NCBI RefSeq assembly: GCF_963676685.1 | Contig: NC_092347.1 | Span: 310,001 to 374,000, forward strand | Reading direction: 5' to 3' | Origin: Mytilus edulis | Taxonomy: Eukaryota | DNA length: 64,000 nt | Shown here: positions 2,166 through 25,100 of the stretch, in pieces | How the letters are laid out: every line of letters starts with the position of its first letter | Numbering within the stretch: position 1 is the first letter of the stretch | Notes under the pieces: model-generated | Databases searched by the model: none | What the model saw: the letters and a program-made list of their open reading frames with translations, nothing else | What the model was told of the DNA's origin: nothing | Translations under genes and position numbers: made by a program

Positions 2166-5100
2166 GGACAGAGGTCTCGGAGACATCATACCAACAACAT
2201 CAGGATAGATGTCTCAGAGACAACAAATCGACATCACAATCAAAGTAATATAGAATAGATGTCACAGAGACACCAAACTGACAACACAATTAAAGTAATA
2301 TGGATAGATGTCATAGAGACAACAAACTGACAACACAATCAAAGTAATATGGATAGATGTCACAGAGACAACAAATTGACAACACAATCAAGTCGTATAG
2401 GAGAGATGTCACAGAGACAACAAACTGACAACACAATTAAAGTAATATAGAATGAATGTCACAGAGACAACAAACTGACAAAACAATCAAAGTAATATAG
2501 GATAGATGTCACAGAGACACCAAACTGACAACACCATCAAAGTAATATAGGATAGATGTCACAGAGACACTAAACTGACAACACCATCAAAGTAATATAG
2601 GATAGATGTCACAGAGACACTAAACTGACAACACCATCAAAGTAATATAGGATAGATGTCACAGAGACAGCAAACTGACAACACAATCAAAGTAATATAG
2701 AATAGATGTCACAGAGACACTAAACTGACAACACTATCAAAGTAACATAGGATAGATGTCACAGGGACAACAAACTGACAACACAATCAAAGTAATGATG
2801 GAAAGATGTTTCAGAGACAACAAACCGACAACAAGTTATCAAAGTAATGTGGGAAAGATGTTTTAGAGACAACAAACCGACAACACTATTAATGTAATTT
2901 GGTAAAGATGTTTCAGAGACAACAAACCGACAACACTGTTAAAGTAATGTGGGAAAGATGTTTCAGAGACAACAAACCGACAACACTGTCAAAGTAATGT
3001 GGGAAAGATGTTTCAGAGACAACAAACCGACAACACAAACTAAAAAATATTGTATAGATGTTTCAGAGACAACAAACCGAGAGCACTATCAAAGTAATGT
3101 TGGATAGATGTTTCAGAGACAACAAACCGACAACACTATCAAAGTAATGTGGGAAAGATGTTTCAGAGACAACAAACCGACAACACTAGCAATGTAATGT
3201 GGGATAGATGTTTCAGAGACAACAAACTGACAACACTATCAAATTAATGTGGGAAAGATGTTTCAGAGACACCAAACTGCCAACACTATCAAAGTAATGT
3301 GGGTTAGATGTTTCAGAGACAACAAACCGACAACACAAACTAAAAAATATTGTATAGATGTTTCAGAGACAACAAACCGAGAGCACTATCAAAGTAATGT
3401 TGGATAGATGTTTCAGAGACAACAAACTGTTAACACAATCTAAAAAGCATAGGATTGATGTTTCAGAGACAACAAACCGACATCACTATCAAAGTAATGT
3501 GGGATAGATGTTTCAGAGACAACAAACCGACAACACTATCAATGTAATGTGGGAAAGATGTTTCAGAGACAACAAACTGACAACACAATCTAAAAAGCAT
3601 AGGATTGATGTTTCAGAGACAACAAACCGACAGCACTATCAAAGTAATGTGGGAAAGATGTTTCAGAGACAACAAACCGACAACACTAGCAATGTAATGT
3701 GGGATAGATGTTTCAGAGACAACAAACTGACAACACTATCAAATTAATGTGGGAAAGATGTTTCAGAGACACCAAACTGACAACACTATCAAAGTAATGT
3801 GGGTTAGATGTTTCAGAGACAACAAACTGACAACACTTTCAAAGTAATGTGGGAAAGATGTTTCAGAGACAACAAACCGACAACACTATCAAAGTTATGT
3901 GGGAAAGAAGTTTCAGAGACAACAAACCGAAAACACTATAAAAGTAATGTGGGAAAGATGTTTCAGAGACAACAAACCGACAATGCAATCTAAGTAATGT
4001 GGGAAAGATGTTTCAGAGACAACAAAATCGACAACACTATCAAAGTAATGTGGGAAAGATGTTTCAGAGACAACAAAACAACAACACTATCAAAGGAATG
4101 TGGGATAGATGTTTCAGAGACAACAAACTGACAACACTATCAAAGTAATGTGGGAAAGATATTTCAGAGACAACAAACCGACAACACTATCAAAGTTATG
4201 TGGGAAAGATGTTTCAGAGACAACAAACCGACAATACAATCTAAGTAATGTTGGATAGATGTTTCAGAGACAACAAACCGACAACACTATCAAAGTAATG
4301 TGGGAAAGATGTTTCAGAGACAATAAATCGACAACACAAACTAAGTAATGTGGGAAAGATGTTTCAGAGACAACAAACCAACAACACTATCAGAGAAATG
4401 TGGGAAAGATGTTTCAGAGACAACAAACCGACAATACAATCTAAGTAATGTGGGAAAGATGTTTCAGAGACAACAAACTGACAATACTATCAAAGTAATG
4501 TGGGAAAGATGTTTCAGAGACAACAAACCGACAACACAAACTAAGTAATGTGGGAAAGATGTTTCAGAGACAACAAACTGACAACACTATCAAAGTAATG
4601 TGGGAAAGATGTTTCAGAGACAATAAATCGACAACACAAACTAAGTAATGTGGGAAAGATGTTTCAGAGACAACAAACCGACAACACTATCAAAGTAATG
4701 TGGGAAAGATGTTTCAGAGACAACAAACCGACAATACAATCTAAGTAATGTTGGATAGATGTTTCAGAGACAACAAACTGACAACACTATCAAAGTAATG
4801 TGGGAAAGATGTTTCAGAGACAATAAATCGACAACACAAACTAAGTAATGTGGGAAAGATGTTTCAGAGACAACAAACCGACAATACAATCTAAGTAATG
4901 TGGGAAAGATGTTTCAGAGACAACAAACCGACAATACAATCTAAGTAATGTGGGAAAGATGTTTCAGAGACAACAAACCGACAATACTATCAAAGTAATG
5001 TGGGATAGATGTTTCAGAGACAACAAACTGACAACACTATCAAAGTAATGTGGGAAAGATGTTTCAGAGACAATAAATCGACAACACAAACTAAGTAATG

Positions 5101-5735
5101 TGGGAAAGATGTTTCAGAGACAACAAACCGACAATACAATCTAAGTAATGTGGGAAAGATGTTTCAGAGACAACAAACTGACAACACTATCAAAGTAATG
5201 TGGAAAAGATGTTTCAGAGACAACAAACCGACAATACAATCTTAGTAATGTTGGATAGATGTTTCAGAGACAACAAACCGACAATACAATCTAAGTAATG
5301 TGGGAAAGATGTTTCAGAGACAACAAACCGACAATACAATCTAAGTAATGTGGGAAAGATGTTTCAGAGACAACAAACTGACAACACTATCAAAGTAATG
5401 TGGGAAAGATGTTTCAGAGACAACAAACCGACAATACAATCTTAGTAATGTTGGATAGATGTTTCAGAGACAACAAACTGACAACACTATCAAAGTAATG
5501 TGGGAAAGATGTTTCAGAGACAACAAACCGACAATACAATCTAAGTAATGTTGAATAGATGTTTCAGAGACAACAAACCAACAATACTATCAAAGTAATG
5601 TGGGAAAGATGTTTCAGAGACAACAAACCGACAACACTAGCAATGTAATGTTGGAAAGATGTTTCAGAGACAACAAACCGACATTACAATCTAAGTAATG
5701 TTGGATAGATGTGGAAGACACAACAAACCAACAAA
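2166..5735. repeat. 50-bp tandem satellite (about 70 copies)
   Basis: Unit GATGTTTCAGAGACAACAAACCGACAACACTATCAAAGTAATGTGGGAAA, with 50-bp period visible directly. A variant subfamily (GATGTCACAG..ATATAGG) occupies about 2200-2790. Confidence 0.97.
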
Positions 5736-19751: not shown

Positions 19752-20222
19752 ATAAGAAGTAAAATCACAAAAATACTGAACTCAGAGGAAAATCAATTCG
19801 GAAAGTCCATAATCACATGGCAGAATCAAATAACAAAACACATCAAAATCGAATGGGCAAGAACTGTCATATTCCTGACTTGGAACAGGCATTTTCAAAT
19901 GTAGAAAATGATGGATTAAACCTGGTTTTATAGCGCTAACCCTCTCACTTTGGTGACAGTCTCATCAAATTCCGTTATATTTACATTGTTGCGTTAACTA
20001 AACAGACACAATAAATAAAATAGTCAAAATATGGGTACAGCAGTCATCATCGTGTAACAATTTTAAAAGGAACAATTTAACAGAACACAAAACATTTATC
20101 TACAAACACATTCATTGATTCGCGTGTCTGACGTCAGAAAATGTTATACGTCAAATATATTTGTCGTTTAATGTACATACAAACAATTTTAAAATTTCAC
20201 ATAGGCAATGTTAGCATACAGG
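19752..20222 (-). mobile_element. Retroelement-like 3' fragment carrying a twister fold
   Basis: Shares the GCCTGTYCCAAGTCAGGA module and layout with the 3' UTR of 21143-22193. Boundaries are approximate. Confidence 0.55.
19863..19960 (-). ncRNA. Putative type-P5 twister ribozyme
   Basis: Minus strand: ACUGUCA..GUGA-GAGGG-UU..GGUUU^AA-UCC-AU-C-AUUUUC(7)GAAAAU-G-CCUG-UUCCAAGU-CAGG-AAUA-UGACAGU. P5, P3 and P4 stems and both pseudoknots are formable; P2 is weak. Confidence 0.7.
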
Positions 20223-21377
20223 GAGAACTGATAGCACGCATTAATAAAACTACTATATATATATGCTTGTGTTGTAAATGTTAATGCCATATTCTTTTTT
20301 TTTCTTTTTTTCTTTACAATGATCGCCAATTACAATTTTTTTTTCGTTGTCCCTTGGTACTTTCTTGTGTTTTTCTGAACCAAGTTTTTTTCATTGCCTT
20401 TTGGTATATTTATTTTTATTTTTAAAAGGACTGTTTTTTTTTAAGATAATAGTATTTTCAACACATATTTAAAAGATAGCTTTTAATTACATAAAACCCC
20501 ATGAAAGTTCCAACATGCTGGATCATAATAATACGAGATATATACGATGGCAACCCTTAGAAAAGACATGATATTTATCAAAATAAAAGCCCAGAAAGAT
20601 GCTTTTAAAATGAACAACGATATACATCTAAAACTCGCTACGTCCTAAATGCATGCCTTAGTAATATATTTTGATTTGAATATCATAAATCTAAACCTTA
20701 CAACATACCACACGTTGCATACACAAACCACTGTTTTATGTTACCTTGTCTTTATAACTAATGGACATTAATCAAACTAGGTTCTTTGTAGTACATGGAG
20801 TCATCAAGATAATCAGACGCTATACTATTTACTTGAACCAGGCGAAACTAATAGGAATTATTCATTTAGTAACAATAAAACAAAAGATCGCTAATGTATA
20901 TGCTGATATTGGGAGCGTTTTATTCCACAATAAATCTAAAGTGTTCAATTTTGTTTTAAATATCTAATTTTATATAATAATTTGATAAAATGTTTTACAA
21001 TAACATTGTAATTCCTGATTGTCATCTAAATGACTGTATGTCAACAAATAGATCCCACTCGATAGATGTATCTGGAGGAATGCGGACTTAGTTGTGTGAT
21101 AAAGGTATCTAGCGAACTGCAGAGAATATGTTTAGTTATGGGATAAAAATGAGAATGGAAATGGGGAATGTGTCAAAGAGACAACAACCCGACCAAATAA
21201 AAAACAACAGCAGAGGGTCACCAACAGGTCTTCAATGTAGCGAGAAATTCCCTCACCCGGAGGTGTCCTTCAGCTGGCCCCTAAACAAATATATACCAGT
21301 CCAGTGATAATGAACGCCATACTAATTTCCAAATTGTACACAAGAAACTAAAATTAAAATAATACAAGACTAACAAA

Positions 21378-21468
21378 GGCCAGAGGCTCCTGACTTGGGA
21401 CAGGCGCAAAAATGCGGCTGGTTTAAACATGTTTGTGAGATCTCAACCCTCCCCCTATACCTCTAACC
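21378..21468 (-). ncRNA. Putative type-P5 twister ribozyme
   Basis: Minus strand: GGUUAGAGGU-AUA-GGGG-GAGGG-UU..AUGUUU^AA-ACCA-GC-C-GCA(UUUU)UGC-G-CCUG-UCCCAAGU-CAGG-A-GCCUCUGGCC. It matches the twister core (UAA, UCCCAAG loop 4, GAGGG). P2 has two mismatches in this copy. Confidence 0.78.
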
Positions 21469-21765
21469 AATGTAGAAAAGTAAACGCATAACAATACGCA
21501 CATTAAAATTCAGTTCAAGAGAAGTCCGAGTCTGATGTCAGAAGATGTAACCAAAGAAAATAAACAAAATGACAATAATACATAAATAACAACAGACTAC
21601 TAGCAGTTAACTGACATGCCAGCTCCAGACTTCAATTAAACTGACTGAAAGATTATGATTTCATCATATGAACATCAGGCACAATCCTTCCCATTAGGGG
21701 TTTAGTATCATACCATCATAACATATATGAGAAGAACATAACCCGTGTCATGCCAACAACTGTTT

Positions 21766-22193
21766 TTAGAATAAATGTGTTAAGTTCCGATGCAAAGACC
21801 TTATCAGTGACTCAATATTAACGCCAAAATATGCAATCTTTAATGACTTGACAACAGTATCGTAATTATATCCCTTCTTAATAAGTCTATTCAAAGGTTT
21901 TGTAAGTTTCTGAGGTGAATACTGACACCTTTGTGCTTTATAAAGAATATTTCCATAAAAAATTGGATGTGAAATACCTGAACGTATTAGAAGTCTGCAT
22001 GTTGAGCTATATTTACGAATGATGTCTTTATACCGATGATAAAATTTAGTAAATGTTTTGACTAGTTTAATTTGTGATATCGAAAACCCTGGTGTAATAA
22101 TTTTTCAGTAATACATAAATTTCTCTCGTTAAAATCTAAAACATTGTTACATACACGAGCGAATCGTACAAGTTGAGATATATAAACACCGTA
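21766..22193 (-). pseudogene. Penelope-like reverse transcriptase C-terminal (thumb) relic
   Basis: Manual translation YGVYISQLVRFARVCNNVLDFNERNLCITEKLLHQGFRYHK/LVKTFTKFYHRYKDIIRKY...HRNLTHLF*, with one frameshift near 22065. Homologous to YGVCISQLIRYSRAC in the ORF at 38769-39110. Confidence 0.85.
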
Positions 22194-22194
22194 A

Positions 22195-25100
22195 TAATTT
22201 ATTTGGCGGCTTGCAGAGACTTTGTTTGGTTACTGGTATGTGATCAATGTATCTGCCGGACTGAATTTGTTTAGTTATGTGATAAAGGTATCTTGCGGAT
22301 TTGTTTAGTTAAGTGATAAAGATATGTGGCGAACTGCAGAGAATAATTATGTTCAGTTATGGAATAAATGTATTTGGCGGCTTGCAGAGAATTTTTTTAG
22401 TGACTGGTACAAATGTATGTGATCAATGTATCTGGTGGATTGCATTAGTTTCGTTATCTGATAAAGGTATCATGTGGCGAACTGCAGAGAATATGTTAAG
22501 ATAAGGGGTAAATGTATTTGGCGGCTTGCAGAGAAAATGTTAAGTTACTGGTATGTGATCTATGTATCTGGCGGACTGCATTTATTTAGTTATGTGATAA
22601 ATGCATCTGGCGAACTGAGAACAGAGAATGTGTTTAGTTATGGGATAACTGTATTTGGAGGCTTGCAGAGAATATGTTTAGTTATGAGATAACTGTATTT
22701 GGCGGCTTGCCGAGAACTTGTTTAGTTACTGGTATGTAATCAATGTATCTGGCGAACTGCAGAGAATTTGTTAAGATATGTGATAAATGTATCTGGCGGA
22801 CTACAGAGAATTTGTTTAGTTATGCGGTCAATATGTATTTGGCGGACTGTAGAGAATTGTTTAGTTGTGGGGATAAATGCATTTGGTGAACTGCTGAGAA
22901 TTTGTTTAATGGTGTGATAAACGTATTATGCGAACTGCAGATGAATTGTTAAGTTATGTGTAAACTGGCGGACTGCTGAGGATAATTGAATTTATTTGAT
23001 CTGGTGGACTGCAAATGAATTGTTTAGTTGTGTAATCAATGTATCTGGCAGACTTCACATGATTTGTTTAGTTGTGTGATACATGCATCTGATGGACTGC
23101 AGAGGATATTTAGTTGTGTGGTACATGTATCTGATGGACTGCAGAGGATATGTTTAGTTGTGTGGTACATGTATCTGATGGACTGCAAAGGATATGTTTA
23201 GTTGTGTGGTACATGTATCTGTTGGTCTGCAGAGGATATGTTTAGTTGTAAGGTAAATGTGTCTGATGGACTGCAGAGGATATGTTTAGTTGTGTGGTAA
23301 ATGTATCTGATGGACTGTAGAGGATATGTTTAGTTGTAAGGTAAATGTGTCTGATGGACTGCAGAGGATATGTTTAGTTGTGTGGTAAATGTATCTGATG
23401 GACTGTAGAGGATATGTTTAGTTGTGAGGTAAATGTATCTGATGGACTGTAGAGGATATGTTTAGTTGTGTGGTAAATGTATCTGATGGACTGTAGAGGA
23501 TATGTTTAGTTGTGAGGTAAATGTATCTGATGGACTGCAGATTATATGTTTAGTTGTGTGGTAAATGTATCTGATGGACTGCAGAGGGTATGTTTAGTTG
23601 TATGGTAAATGTATCTATTGTTCTGCAGAGGATATGTTTAGCTGTGTGGTACATGTATCTGATGGGCTGCAGAGGATATGTTTAGTTGTGTAGTACATGT
23701 ATCTAATGGACTGCAGAGGATATCTTTAGTTGTGTGGTACATGTAATATCTGATGGTCTGCAGAGGATATGTTTAGTTGTGTGGTAAATGTATCTGATGG
23801 ACTACAGGGGATATGTTTAGTTGTTTGGTAAATGTATCTGATGGACTGCAGAGGATATTTAGTTGTGTGGTACATGTATTTGATGGACTGCAGAGGATAT
23901 CTTTAGTTGTGTGGTAAATGTATCTGATGGACTACAGGGGATATGTTTAGTTGTGTGGTAAATGTATCTGATGGACTGCAGAGGATATGTTTAGTTGTGT
24001 GGAAAATTTATCTGATGGACTGCAGAGGATATGTTTAGTTATGTTGTAAATGTATCTGGTGGTCTGCAGAGGATATGTTCAGTTGTGTGGTACATGTATC
24101 TGATGGTCTGCAGAGGATTTGTTTAGTTGTGTGGAAAATTTATCTGATGGACTGCAGAGGATATATTTAGTTATATTGTAAATGTATCTGGTGGTCTGCA
24201 GAGTATATGTTTAGTTGTGTGGTAAATGTATCTGATGGACTACAGGGGATATGTTTAGTTGTGTGTTACATGTATTTGATGGACTGCAGAGGATATGTTT
24301 AGTTGTGTGGTAAATGTATCTGATGGACTGCAGATTATATGTTTAGTTGTGTGGAAAATTTATCTGATGGACTGCAGAGGATATGTTTAGTTATGTTATA
24401 AATGTATCTGGTGGTCTGCAGAGGATATGTTCAGTTGTGTGGTACATGTATCTGATTGACTGCAGAGGATATGTTTAGTTGTGTGGTACATGTATCTGAT
24501 GGACTGCAAAGGATATCTTTAGTTGTGTGGTAAATGTATCTGGTGGTCTGCAGAGGATATGTTCAGTTGTGTGGTACATGTATCTGATGGTCTGCAGAGG
24601 ATATGTTTAGTTGTGTGGTACATGTAGCTGATGGACTGCAGAGGATATGTTTAGTTGTGTGGTAAATGTATCTGGTGTTCTGCAGAGGATATGTTTAGTT
24701 GTGTGGTACATGTATCTGATTGACTGCAGATGATATGTTTGGTTGTGTGGTAAATGTATCTGATGGACTGTAGATTATATCTTAAGTTGTGTGTTAAATG
24801 TATCTGATTGACTGCAGAGGATATGTTTAGTTGTGTGGTACATATATCTGATGGATTGTAGAGGATATGTTTAGTTGTGTGGTACATGTATCTGATGGAC
24901 TGCAGAGGATATGTTTAGTTGTGTGGTAAATGTATGTGATGGATTGTAGAGGATATGTTTTGTTGTGTGGTAAATGTATCTGATGGACTGCAGAGGATAT
25001 GTTTAGTTGTGTGGTACATGTATCTGGTGGTCTGCAAAGGATATGTTCAGTTGTGTGGTACATGTATCTGGTGGTCTGCAAAGGATATGTTCAGTTGTGT

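Follow-up and report, generated by a model that had tools for sequence, protein, structure and literature searches.

A 64,000-nucleotide stretch of Mytilus edulis DNA (contig NC_092347.1, positions 310,001 to 374,000 of the forward strand; hereafter called the window) carries on its minus strand a 5′-truncated retroelement of the Naiad type, a kind of Penelope-like element (PLE). Downstream of the reverse transcriptase (RT) coding remnant of this element lies a 91-nucleotide RNA motif that is almost certainly a true member of the twister ribozyme class, homologous in fold to known twisters and arranged as their type-P5 circular permutation. Judged from comparative alignments, this motif is a conserved component of the 3′ untranslated region (UTR), or pseudo-long terminal repeat (pLTR), of a large subclade of Naiad PLEs. 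Our overall interpretation, which we regard as probable, is that a type-P5 twister resides in the Naiad pLTR, that its P1 helix has been replaced by two self-complementary segments, and that the master copies of the element cleave themselves.

Architecture of the motif

The motif was originally noticed in a sequence-only reading of the window, which proposed a circularly permuted twister about 300 nucleotides past the stop codon of an RT-encoding element. On re-reading the minus strand between 21143 and 22193, we find every one of the listed segments of the 91-nucleotide RNA as they had been given, and the motif begins 298 nucleotides beyond the stop codon. From its 5′ end, the RNA presents a P5 strand of 10 nucleotides, AUA, GGGG, GAGGG, a stretch of about 21 nucleotides, UAA, ACCA, GC and a hairpin closed by a C-G pair, and these are followed in order by CCUG, UCCCAAGU, CAGG, A and the complementary P5 strand (Table 1). 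This core agrees segment by segment with the published twister consensus (PMC8501958 Table 1; PMC5408937). Furthermore, all aligned sequences share the order P5a-P2′-L1-(P1 region)-UAA-P2-L2-P3-P4-P5b, wherein the RNA termini reside in P5 and the P1 side is closed.

Covariation and nucleotide conservation

Base pairing was counted in an alignment of 26 distinct sequences, using the structure of the sequence-only reading with its two pseudoknots (T1 and T2) and the closing pair of P3. The nested helices were scored on an alignment fitted by a covariance model, and since this model does not include the pseudoknots, the alignment cannot have been fitted to T1 or T2. Standard pairs occupy 91.3% of the cells, compared to 37-45% when the partners are slid by one to three columns, and shuffled sequences pair in 65% of cells, with none of 500 shuffles reaching the observed value. 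Changes on both sides are evident in 22 of the 27 pairs, and the covariation score is 0.667, compared to 0.07-0.11 with slid partners; covariation among these sequences thus bears out the structure that had been proposed.

The individual helices behave in the same manner. In P5 (88.6% of cells paired), both partners of all ten pairs have changed among the lineages, as they have in every pair of P3, while P2 (84.6% paired) contains three covarying pairs and P4 (100% paired) contains two. Both pseudoknots, previously described as formable, are maintained by compensatory changes. T1 is paired in 98.1% of cells, and one of its positions reads CG in 13 sequences, AU in five, GU in five, GC in one and UG in one, with a single non-pair. 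T2 is paired in 86.1% of cells, with one pair that is GC in 21 sequences and AU in three.

The positions that are conserved in our alignment are those named as near-invariant in twisters (PMC5408937; Table 1 of PMC8501958). The first G of L1 is present in all 26 sequences and the following A in 25, and the later positions of L1 vary only jointly with L4. Likewise, U(-1) and A(+1) are each retained in 25 sequences, and A(+2) and the C of L2 in all 26. Within L4, which is of the UCCCAAGC type, the successive conserved nucleotides are U (25 of 26), C (26), C (23), A (25), A (25) and G (26), with variation at positions 2 and 8. Given that P2, P3, P4 and P5 are kept by compensatory changes and that the invariant nucleotides are conserved, the assignment of the motif to the P5 permutation stands. 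Copies of the family to which the window copy belongs are 96-100% identical and therefore offer no within-family covariation; the sole variable spot among them is the 5′ strand of P2.

Occurrence in diverged Naiad lineages

Two covariance models were employed, one (R1) built from the motif with the nested helices of the sequence-only reading and a second (R2), neither of which encodes the pseudoknots. These motif models recover homologous motifs in diverged families with E values of 1e-7 to 1e-19. In the same genome, R1 identifies a second family (L072-L076; 56.9 bits, E 4e-12) and a fourth (L029; 38.4 bits). R1 also picks up family 3, a remoter lineage that has left a relic within the window. 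The RTs of family 1, to which the window copy belongs, and family 2 are 70% identical, and their 3′ UTRs (626 and 1,026 nucleotides) are unalignable except for the twister, which forms an island of 65-78% identity.

Our metagenome sample consists of 80 contigs encoding relatives of the RT at 38-99% identity. R2 finds the motif in 30 of these contigs, and in all 30 it lies on the RT strand. In 29 cases the motif is downstream of the open reading frame, mostly 290-680 nucleotides past its end and in one instance at 851 nucleotides, and in the remaining case it resides in the upstream pLTR. Among contigs that have an RT identity of at least 51% and at least 500 nucleotides of downstream sequence, 24 of 25 carry the motif. 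The 3′ UTR regions of two motif-bearing metagenome lineages have no DNA match in the genome from which the window derives, which indicates that the association of twisters with Naiads reaches other marine organisms.

A twister relic of the distant family 3 lies about 1.2 kb from the main element (Table 1), and a motif of this type is also located downstream of an RT of 42% identity in contig L123. Family 3 and several relics, in which P2 and T1 are weakened, may be inactive. At one other locus (L064:2687-2870, minus strand), a family-3-type 3′ tail interrupts the twister of another family a few bases short of the predicted cleavage site, and this single case may represent either a nested insertion into an AT-rich site or a template-switch product.

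Two palindromes in place of P1

The strand that follows GAGGG shows no complementarity to the strand that precedes U(-1), and each of the two is instead self-complementary. Neither these palindromes nor a selenocysteine insertion sequence (SECIS)-like element between the stop codon and the twister had been noted in the sequence-only reading. Every sequence carries a perfect palindrome of 6-10 nucleotides that begins one to three nucleotides after L1, and about 14 different sequences occupy this one place (for example, UGAGAUCUCA, UGGAUCCA, UGGGCCCA, GGGCGCCC and GUAGCGCUAC). A second palindrome, of the AAAC..GUUU type and with U(-1) as its last base, is present in most sequences. Palindromes of at least 8 nucleotides are present in 25 of the 26 distinct sequences (96%), compared to 7.5% of shuffles, and two family-2 copies that differ by a central AU-to-GC double change have kept the symmetry.

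A role for the palindromes as hairpins was rejected on energetic grounds, because the hairpins are predicted at about 0 kcal/mol while the homodimers are predicted at -11 to -20 kcal/mol. Each palindrome occurs once per unit, and a search for a second copy of palindrome 1 inside one unit found none, so that no long-range partner is available within a unit. Most likely, therefore, selection has favored palindromes that let one RNA pair with another, or one copy with the other copy of a tandem transcript, and by analogy such pairing might make folding or cleavage dependent on dimers. Dimeric cleavage has been reported for small hammerhead ribozymes of PLEs (cited in PMC6765202). Although the P1 helix of twisters is conserved across phylogeny, catalysis does not require it (PMC5408937), and twisters also tolerate an imperfect P1 or P2 (PMC5408937; PMC11662667).

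Genomic copies and the family master

An exact 34-nucleotide pattern that spans the cleavage site and P3/P4 of family 1 occurs 5,254 times in the genome. Among the first 100 of these matches in chromosomal order, 99 have CCCC opposite GGGG and hence a perfect P2. The sequence-only reading had noted two P2 mismatches and had cautioned that this copy might be inactive, a caution that is right for the window copy but does not extend to its family. The P2 sequence of the window copy (ACCA) marks it as a rare and weakened variant of a family whose master is, on the same criterion, unimpaired; the window copy itself is a dead, 5′-truncated insertion with a weakened P2.

Full-length family-1 units are also found head to tail with a period of 4,031-4,036 bp (Table 1). 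In several metagenome contigs the twister and the tail that follows it are repeated upstream of a full copy, as in L086, where positions 1-239 recur at 4182-4421, and in both L086 and L087 the twister is inside the repeated pLTR part. The twister sits 235-300 nucleotides short of the 3′ end of the element, within the part that is repeated.

Predicted cleavage, its possible purpose and the alternatives

Several observations weigh against the interpretation that these RNAs are cleaving twisters with a function in the Naiad life cycle. First, no twister match is obtained when the window is scanned with Rfam at gathering thresholds. A permissive scan yields 18.2 bits for Twister-P5 (RF02684; gathering 37.6), in an alignment whose register is wrong and in which the GAGGG and UAA matches are lost, and at best 24.1 bits for twister-P1 (RF03160; gathering 67.2). 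A search of the whole genome with RF02684 likewise produced no match, although the control was equally silent and this search is hence uninformative. Second, the minimum free energy of the window copy is unremarkable (z = -1.5), as calculated by a folding procedure that is blind to pseudoknots. Third, P1 is absent. Fourth, the motif is mostly undetected in contigs whose RT identity is 47% or lower. Regarding the first of these points, the expectation that covariance models would recognize the motif holds for models built from the motif itself, which find diverged families, but not for the Rfam twister models, whose scores remain below gathering. The existing Rfam twister models therefore miss a whole natural subclass.

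A fifth set of observations concerns the ends of genomic copies. TTT before A(+1) is absent in only 8 of about 5,260 copies (C3:26229452, C4:52895112, C5:49214723, C6:60254264, C10:84740906, C14:84469, C14:17020620 and C2339:9669), and these eight mostly look like small deletions that have taken part or all of palindrome 2. Neither copies that start at A(+1) nor copies that end at U(-1) were seen in family 1. Because 5′ ends are not piled at the predicted site, 3′ cleavage fragments are not retrotransposed, and we rejected the linear 3′ cleavage fragment as a template (8 versus 5,254 copies when starts at A(+1) were sought). Genomic copies end 281 nucleotides beyond the predicted cleavage site, and so the ribozyme does not set the 3′ end of the template.

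Some of these features would suit a twister-derived structured RNA that has kept the fold and lost cleavage, and that now provides a recognition or assembly site for the RT and endonuclease (EN) or a module for RNA dimerization, in the manner of the 3′ UTR structures of other target-primed retroelements. The canonical P1 is absent, the palindromes point to RNA-RNA dimerization, copies starting at the predicted cleavage site are not in excess, the 3′ end of the element is 235-300 nucleotides beyond the motif, and the Rfam models score below threshold. We nevertheless consider such an RNA unlikely. The nucleotides that matter only for the chemistry, namely A(+1), U(-1) and the first G of L1, are kept in 25 or 26 of the 26 sequences, although a structural role would permit them to drift, and loss of P1 does not abolish catalysis (PMC5408937).

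Given this pattern of conservation, self-cleavage of the master copies at the U(-1)/A(+1) step is, in our view, likely. This reaction, which in the window copy would take place at 21425/21424, is expected to yield a 2′,3′-cyclic phosphate and a 5′-hydroxyl. By analogy with PLE hammerheads and retrozymes, two twisters in a read-through transcript or in a tandem/pLTR transcript would excise a unit-length RNA. The 3′ half-twister (P5a, P2′ and L1) and the 5′ half-twister (UAA side, P2, P3, P4 and P5b) of this RNA could then re-associate via the long P5 and P2, and the re-formed twister would hold the ends next to each other, so that ligation could close a circle with the sequence restored. Pairing of the palindromes would link two molecules, or two copies carried on a single transcript. 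Excision followed by circularization gives the best fit and would account for the absence of genomic copies that have either end at the predicted cleavage site, and we judge the chances that the twister serves unit-length processing or circularization to be evenly balanced.

An active twister might instead be a selfish passenger on Naiads that takes no part in retrotransposition, a possibility that Craig et al. reportedly raised for the hammerheads of PLEs. Ribozyme-less elements are known to proliferate well (PMC8557442), and the distant Naiad-like contigs with RT identities of 47% or lower are mostly without a detectable motif, as would be consistent with a passenger. However, the position and orientation of the motif remain constant down to RT identities of about 42-55% while the flanking UTR has diverged beyond alignment. 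Moreover, of the 25 lineages of the subclade that were adequately sampled, 24 have the motif. A costly or neutral passenger would often have been lost, and we find the passenger explanation quite improbable. Finally, a chance likeness between an abundant repeat and the twister consensus, which the sub-threshold Rfam scores might have favored, is excluded by the homologous motifs in lineages absent from this genome, by the compensatory changes in every helix and both pseudoknots, and by the failure of all 500 shuffles to reach the observed pairing.

If the twister is indeed a working part of the element, a broader reading can be offered, albeit tentatively: EN-containing (EN+) PLEs may need a pLTR ribozyme whose class is interchangeable, and the Naiad P5 twister, its P1 turned into a pair of palindromes, may fold or cleave only as a dimer, whether of two RNAs or of the two pLTR copies in one tandem transcript, so that cleavage would be coupled to unit-length excision and circularization. 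It is similarly possible, under such a need for a ribozyme, that the Naiad subclade dominating in bivalves replaced its hammerhead or never had one. If true, this would make the Naiad RNA the first obligate-dimer twister and would mean that ribozymes were recruited convergently within one retroelement order.

The host element and its surroundings

The window copy encodes on its minus strand an RT C-terminus (YGVYISQLVRFARVC...KLLHQG...KFYHRY), and the same residues are read through without a frame break in the intact family-1 copies L038 and L036. The long frames of L038 and of the family-2 copy L074 contain an RT with a YLDD motif as well as VPADKAANN, a DKG motif in its DKA variant. A CxC motif situated between EN and RT reads SCNC in family 1 and, at the same place, (Sec)DC in family 2. 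Both CxC and DKA are diagnostic of Naiads (PMC8557442). Upstream of the family-2 RT, a GIY...YVG...R..EH...N pattern can be recognized by eye, and Pfam returned a blank on the piece after the in-frame TGA. In searches with the protein pieces, Pfam gave only a weak RVT_1 match (E 0.01) and PDB gave no match. Rfam scans of the window and of other copies and contigs found no hammerhead inside these elements. The sequence-only reading had placed the element among PLEs of the Naiad type, and this placement is supported by the CxC and DKA motifs, a putative GIY-YIG-like region, the pLTR/tandem organization and the absence of a hammerhead.

Outside the element, a tandem repeat that adjoins the family-1 copy in L038 holds three type-I hammerhead motifs spaced 354 bp apart (plus strand, 4805-4848, 5159-5202 and 5513-5556; 33, 23.5 and 33 bits, gathering 34). 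This repeat looks like the hammerhead-bearing 'retrozyme' satellites that are known from mussels.

The 3′ end of the window copy at 21143 is common to 29 other genomic copies whose 5′ truncation points are scattered, and we therefore take the element boundaries to be real. A satellite with a 44-bp period and higher-order periods of 132-137 bp surrounds the element (22237-23600 and 21080-21142), which fits the published preference of Naiads for insertion into repeats. Pieces of 100-140 nucleotides from the extreme 3′ tail are located just upstream of 5′-truncated copies (L037:3721-3829, L029:320-460 and L004:302-400), and these fragments match the 'tail' or partial-tandem feature described for PLEs.

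These elements also look like selenoprotein-encoding Naiads, as published for clams. The family-2 frame of 960 codons is broken only by five TGA codons, several of which are at conserved Cys positions (in the putative GIY-YIG region, in CxC and after DKA), and family 1 has one in-frame TGA. Sub-threshold SECIS_1-like matches (23-34 bits) occur shortly after the stop codon in families 1 and 2 and in about ten metagenome lineages.

Table 1. Coordinates of the twister motif, its host element and related features. Plain positions refer to the window; L and C numbers denote other sequences.
Feature	Position	Strand	Remarks
Naiad-type PLE copy, 5′-truncated, family 1	21143..22193	-	inserted in 44-bp satellite; fixed 3′ end at 21143, satellite on both flanks
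RT C-terminal coding remnant	21766..22193	-	frame broken near 22060-22070; TAA stop at 21766-21768
SECIS-like element	21665..21729	-	about 37 nt after the stop; SECIS_1 32.6 bits (gathering 35)
Type-P5 twister-fold RNA, whole motif	21378..21468	-	
P5 5′ strand	21459..21468	-	pairs with 21378-21387
P2 3′-side strand, GGGG	21452..21455	-	pairs with 21419-21422; perfect 4 bp in family master
L1 strand, GAGGG	21447..21451	-	presumed catalytic guanine at its first G; GGG and the CCC of L4 form pseudoknot T2
Palindrome 1, 10 nt	21436..21445	-	in place of the P1 3′ strand
Palindrome 2, AAAC..GUUU type	21425..21434	-	last base is U(-1)
UAA with predicted scissile bond	21423..21425	-	bond 21425 (U) / 21424 (A), as aligned with the consensus of twisters (PMC8501958 Table 1, PMC5408937)
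P2 5′-side strand	21419..21422	-	ACCA here, giving two mismatches
L2 and P3 hairpin	21405..21418	-	GC of L2 is a partner in pseudoknot T1; P3 with closing C-G pair
P4 (CCUG/CAGG) and loop L4 (UCCCAAGU)	21389..21404	-	
P5 3′ strand	21378..21387	-	
3′ tail of element beyond twister	21143..21377	-	twister and tail form the repeated unit in tandem/pLTR arrangements
Family-3 twister relic, distant family	19862..19961	-	R2 63.6 bits; P5, P3, P4, L1 and UAA present; P2 and T1 weakened
SECIS-like, other elements	L074:3018-3075; L058:1788-1850; L122:945-1005		
Tandem family-1 arrays	C2:6415618/6419649/6423680; C12:63447689/63451720; C11:49933343/49937379/49941414		

Relationship to known ribozymes and retroelements

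To our knowledge, hammerheads are always present in canonical PLEs, where Cervera and de la Pena (2014) and Lunse et al. (2017) are said to have found them in the pLTRs. What these hammerheads do is unsettled, and the 2021 description of Naiads saw the apparent lack of a ribozyme as a hint that the ribozyme may be a dispensable passenger. Specifically, canonical hammerheads were not found in Naiads, no ribozyme was reported and twisters were not mentioned (PMC8557442). This argument is turned around by the presence of a conserved twister in Naiads at the corresponding location, and the fact that sister clades carry ribozymes of two unrelated classes in one and the same position points to a requirement for cleavage. 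The host retrotransposon constitutes a sizeable part of bivalve genomes, and its thousands of young copies, natural P2 variants and covarying palindromes provide a tractable system wherein dimer-dependent cleavage and circular RNA intermediates are testable.

Twisters at the 5′ ends of Perere-3 are already known (PMC8501958), those at the 5′ ends of RTE elements have been mentioned as 'in preparation' (PMC7761336), and predicted twisters in bivalves have been listed without context (PMC11662667). Our search of the literature, with subscription journals outside its reach, found no paper that links twisters to Naiads.

The nearest known RNA is Twister type-P5 (RF02684, clan CL00120; Roth et al. 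2014 per PMC5408937), with which the Naiad motif shares UAA and GAGGG in L1, GC in L2, an L4 of the UCCCAAG type, P2 and P4 with optional P3 and P5, termini in P5, and the covarying double pseudoknots T1 and T2. Unlike that class, the Naiad motif has two palindromes instead of a P1 helix and has both P3 and a long P5. In addition, many Naiad lineages carry CC/GG or AU/GU in T1 and GAGG-U in L1, and their scores fall below the Rfam thresholds.

With the hammerheads of PLE pLTRs (PMC6765202), the Naiad motif has in common that it is a small motif, self-cleaving in the one case and predicted to be so in the other, on the sense strand of the repeated 3′/pLTR part of an EN+ PLE. It also resembles them in its position away from the element ends, in self-complementary segments that suggest dimers, and in the partial tandems of its host. 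In contrast, the class of ribozyme is unrelated, being a twister. The twisters at the 5′ ends of retrotransposons are alike in that a twister-class motif with a degenerate or missing P1 is carried by a retrotransposon. However, those RNAs are of type P1, they define the 5′ end of the RNA, and target-site duplications abut their cleavage site, whereas the Naiad motif is a type-P5 RNA in the 3′ UTR that leaves no footprint at insertion ends. The host itself most closely recalls the selenoprotein Naiads of clams and spiders (PMC8557442), with which it shares the CxC and DKA motifs, in-frame TGA codons where conserved Cys residues are expected, a SECIS-like element close behind the stop codon, a location within repeats, and a very high copy number in a bivalve-like genome, as well as, putatively, an N-terminal GIY-YIG (here a pattern recognized by eye).

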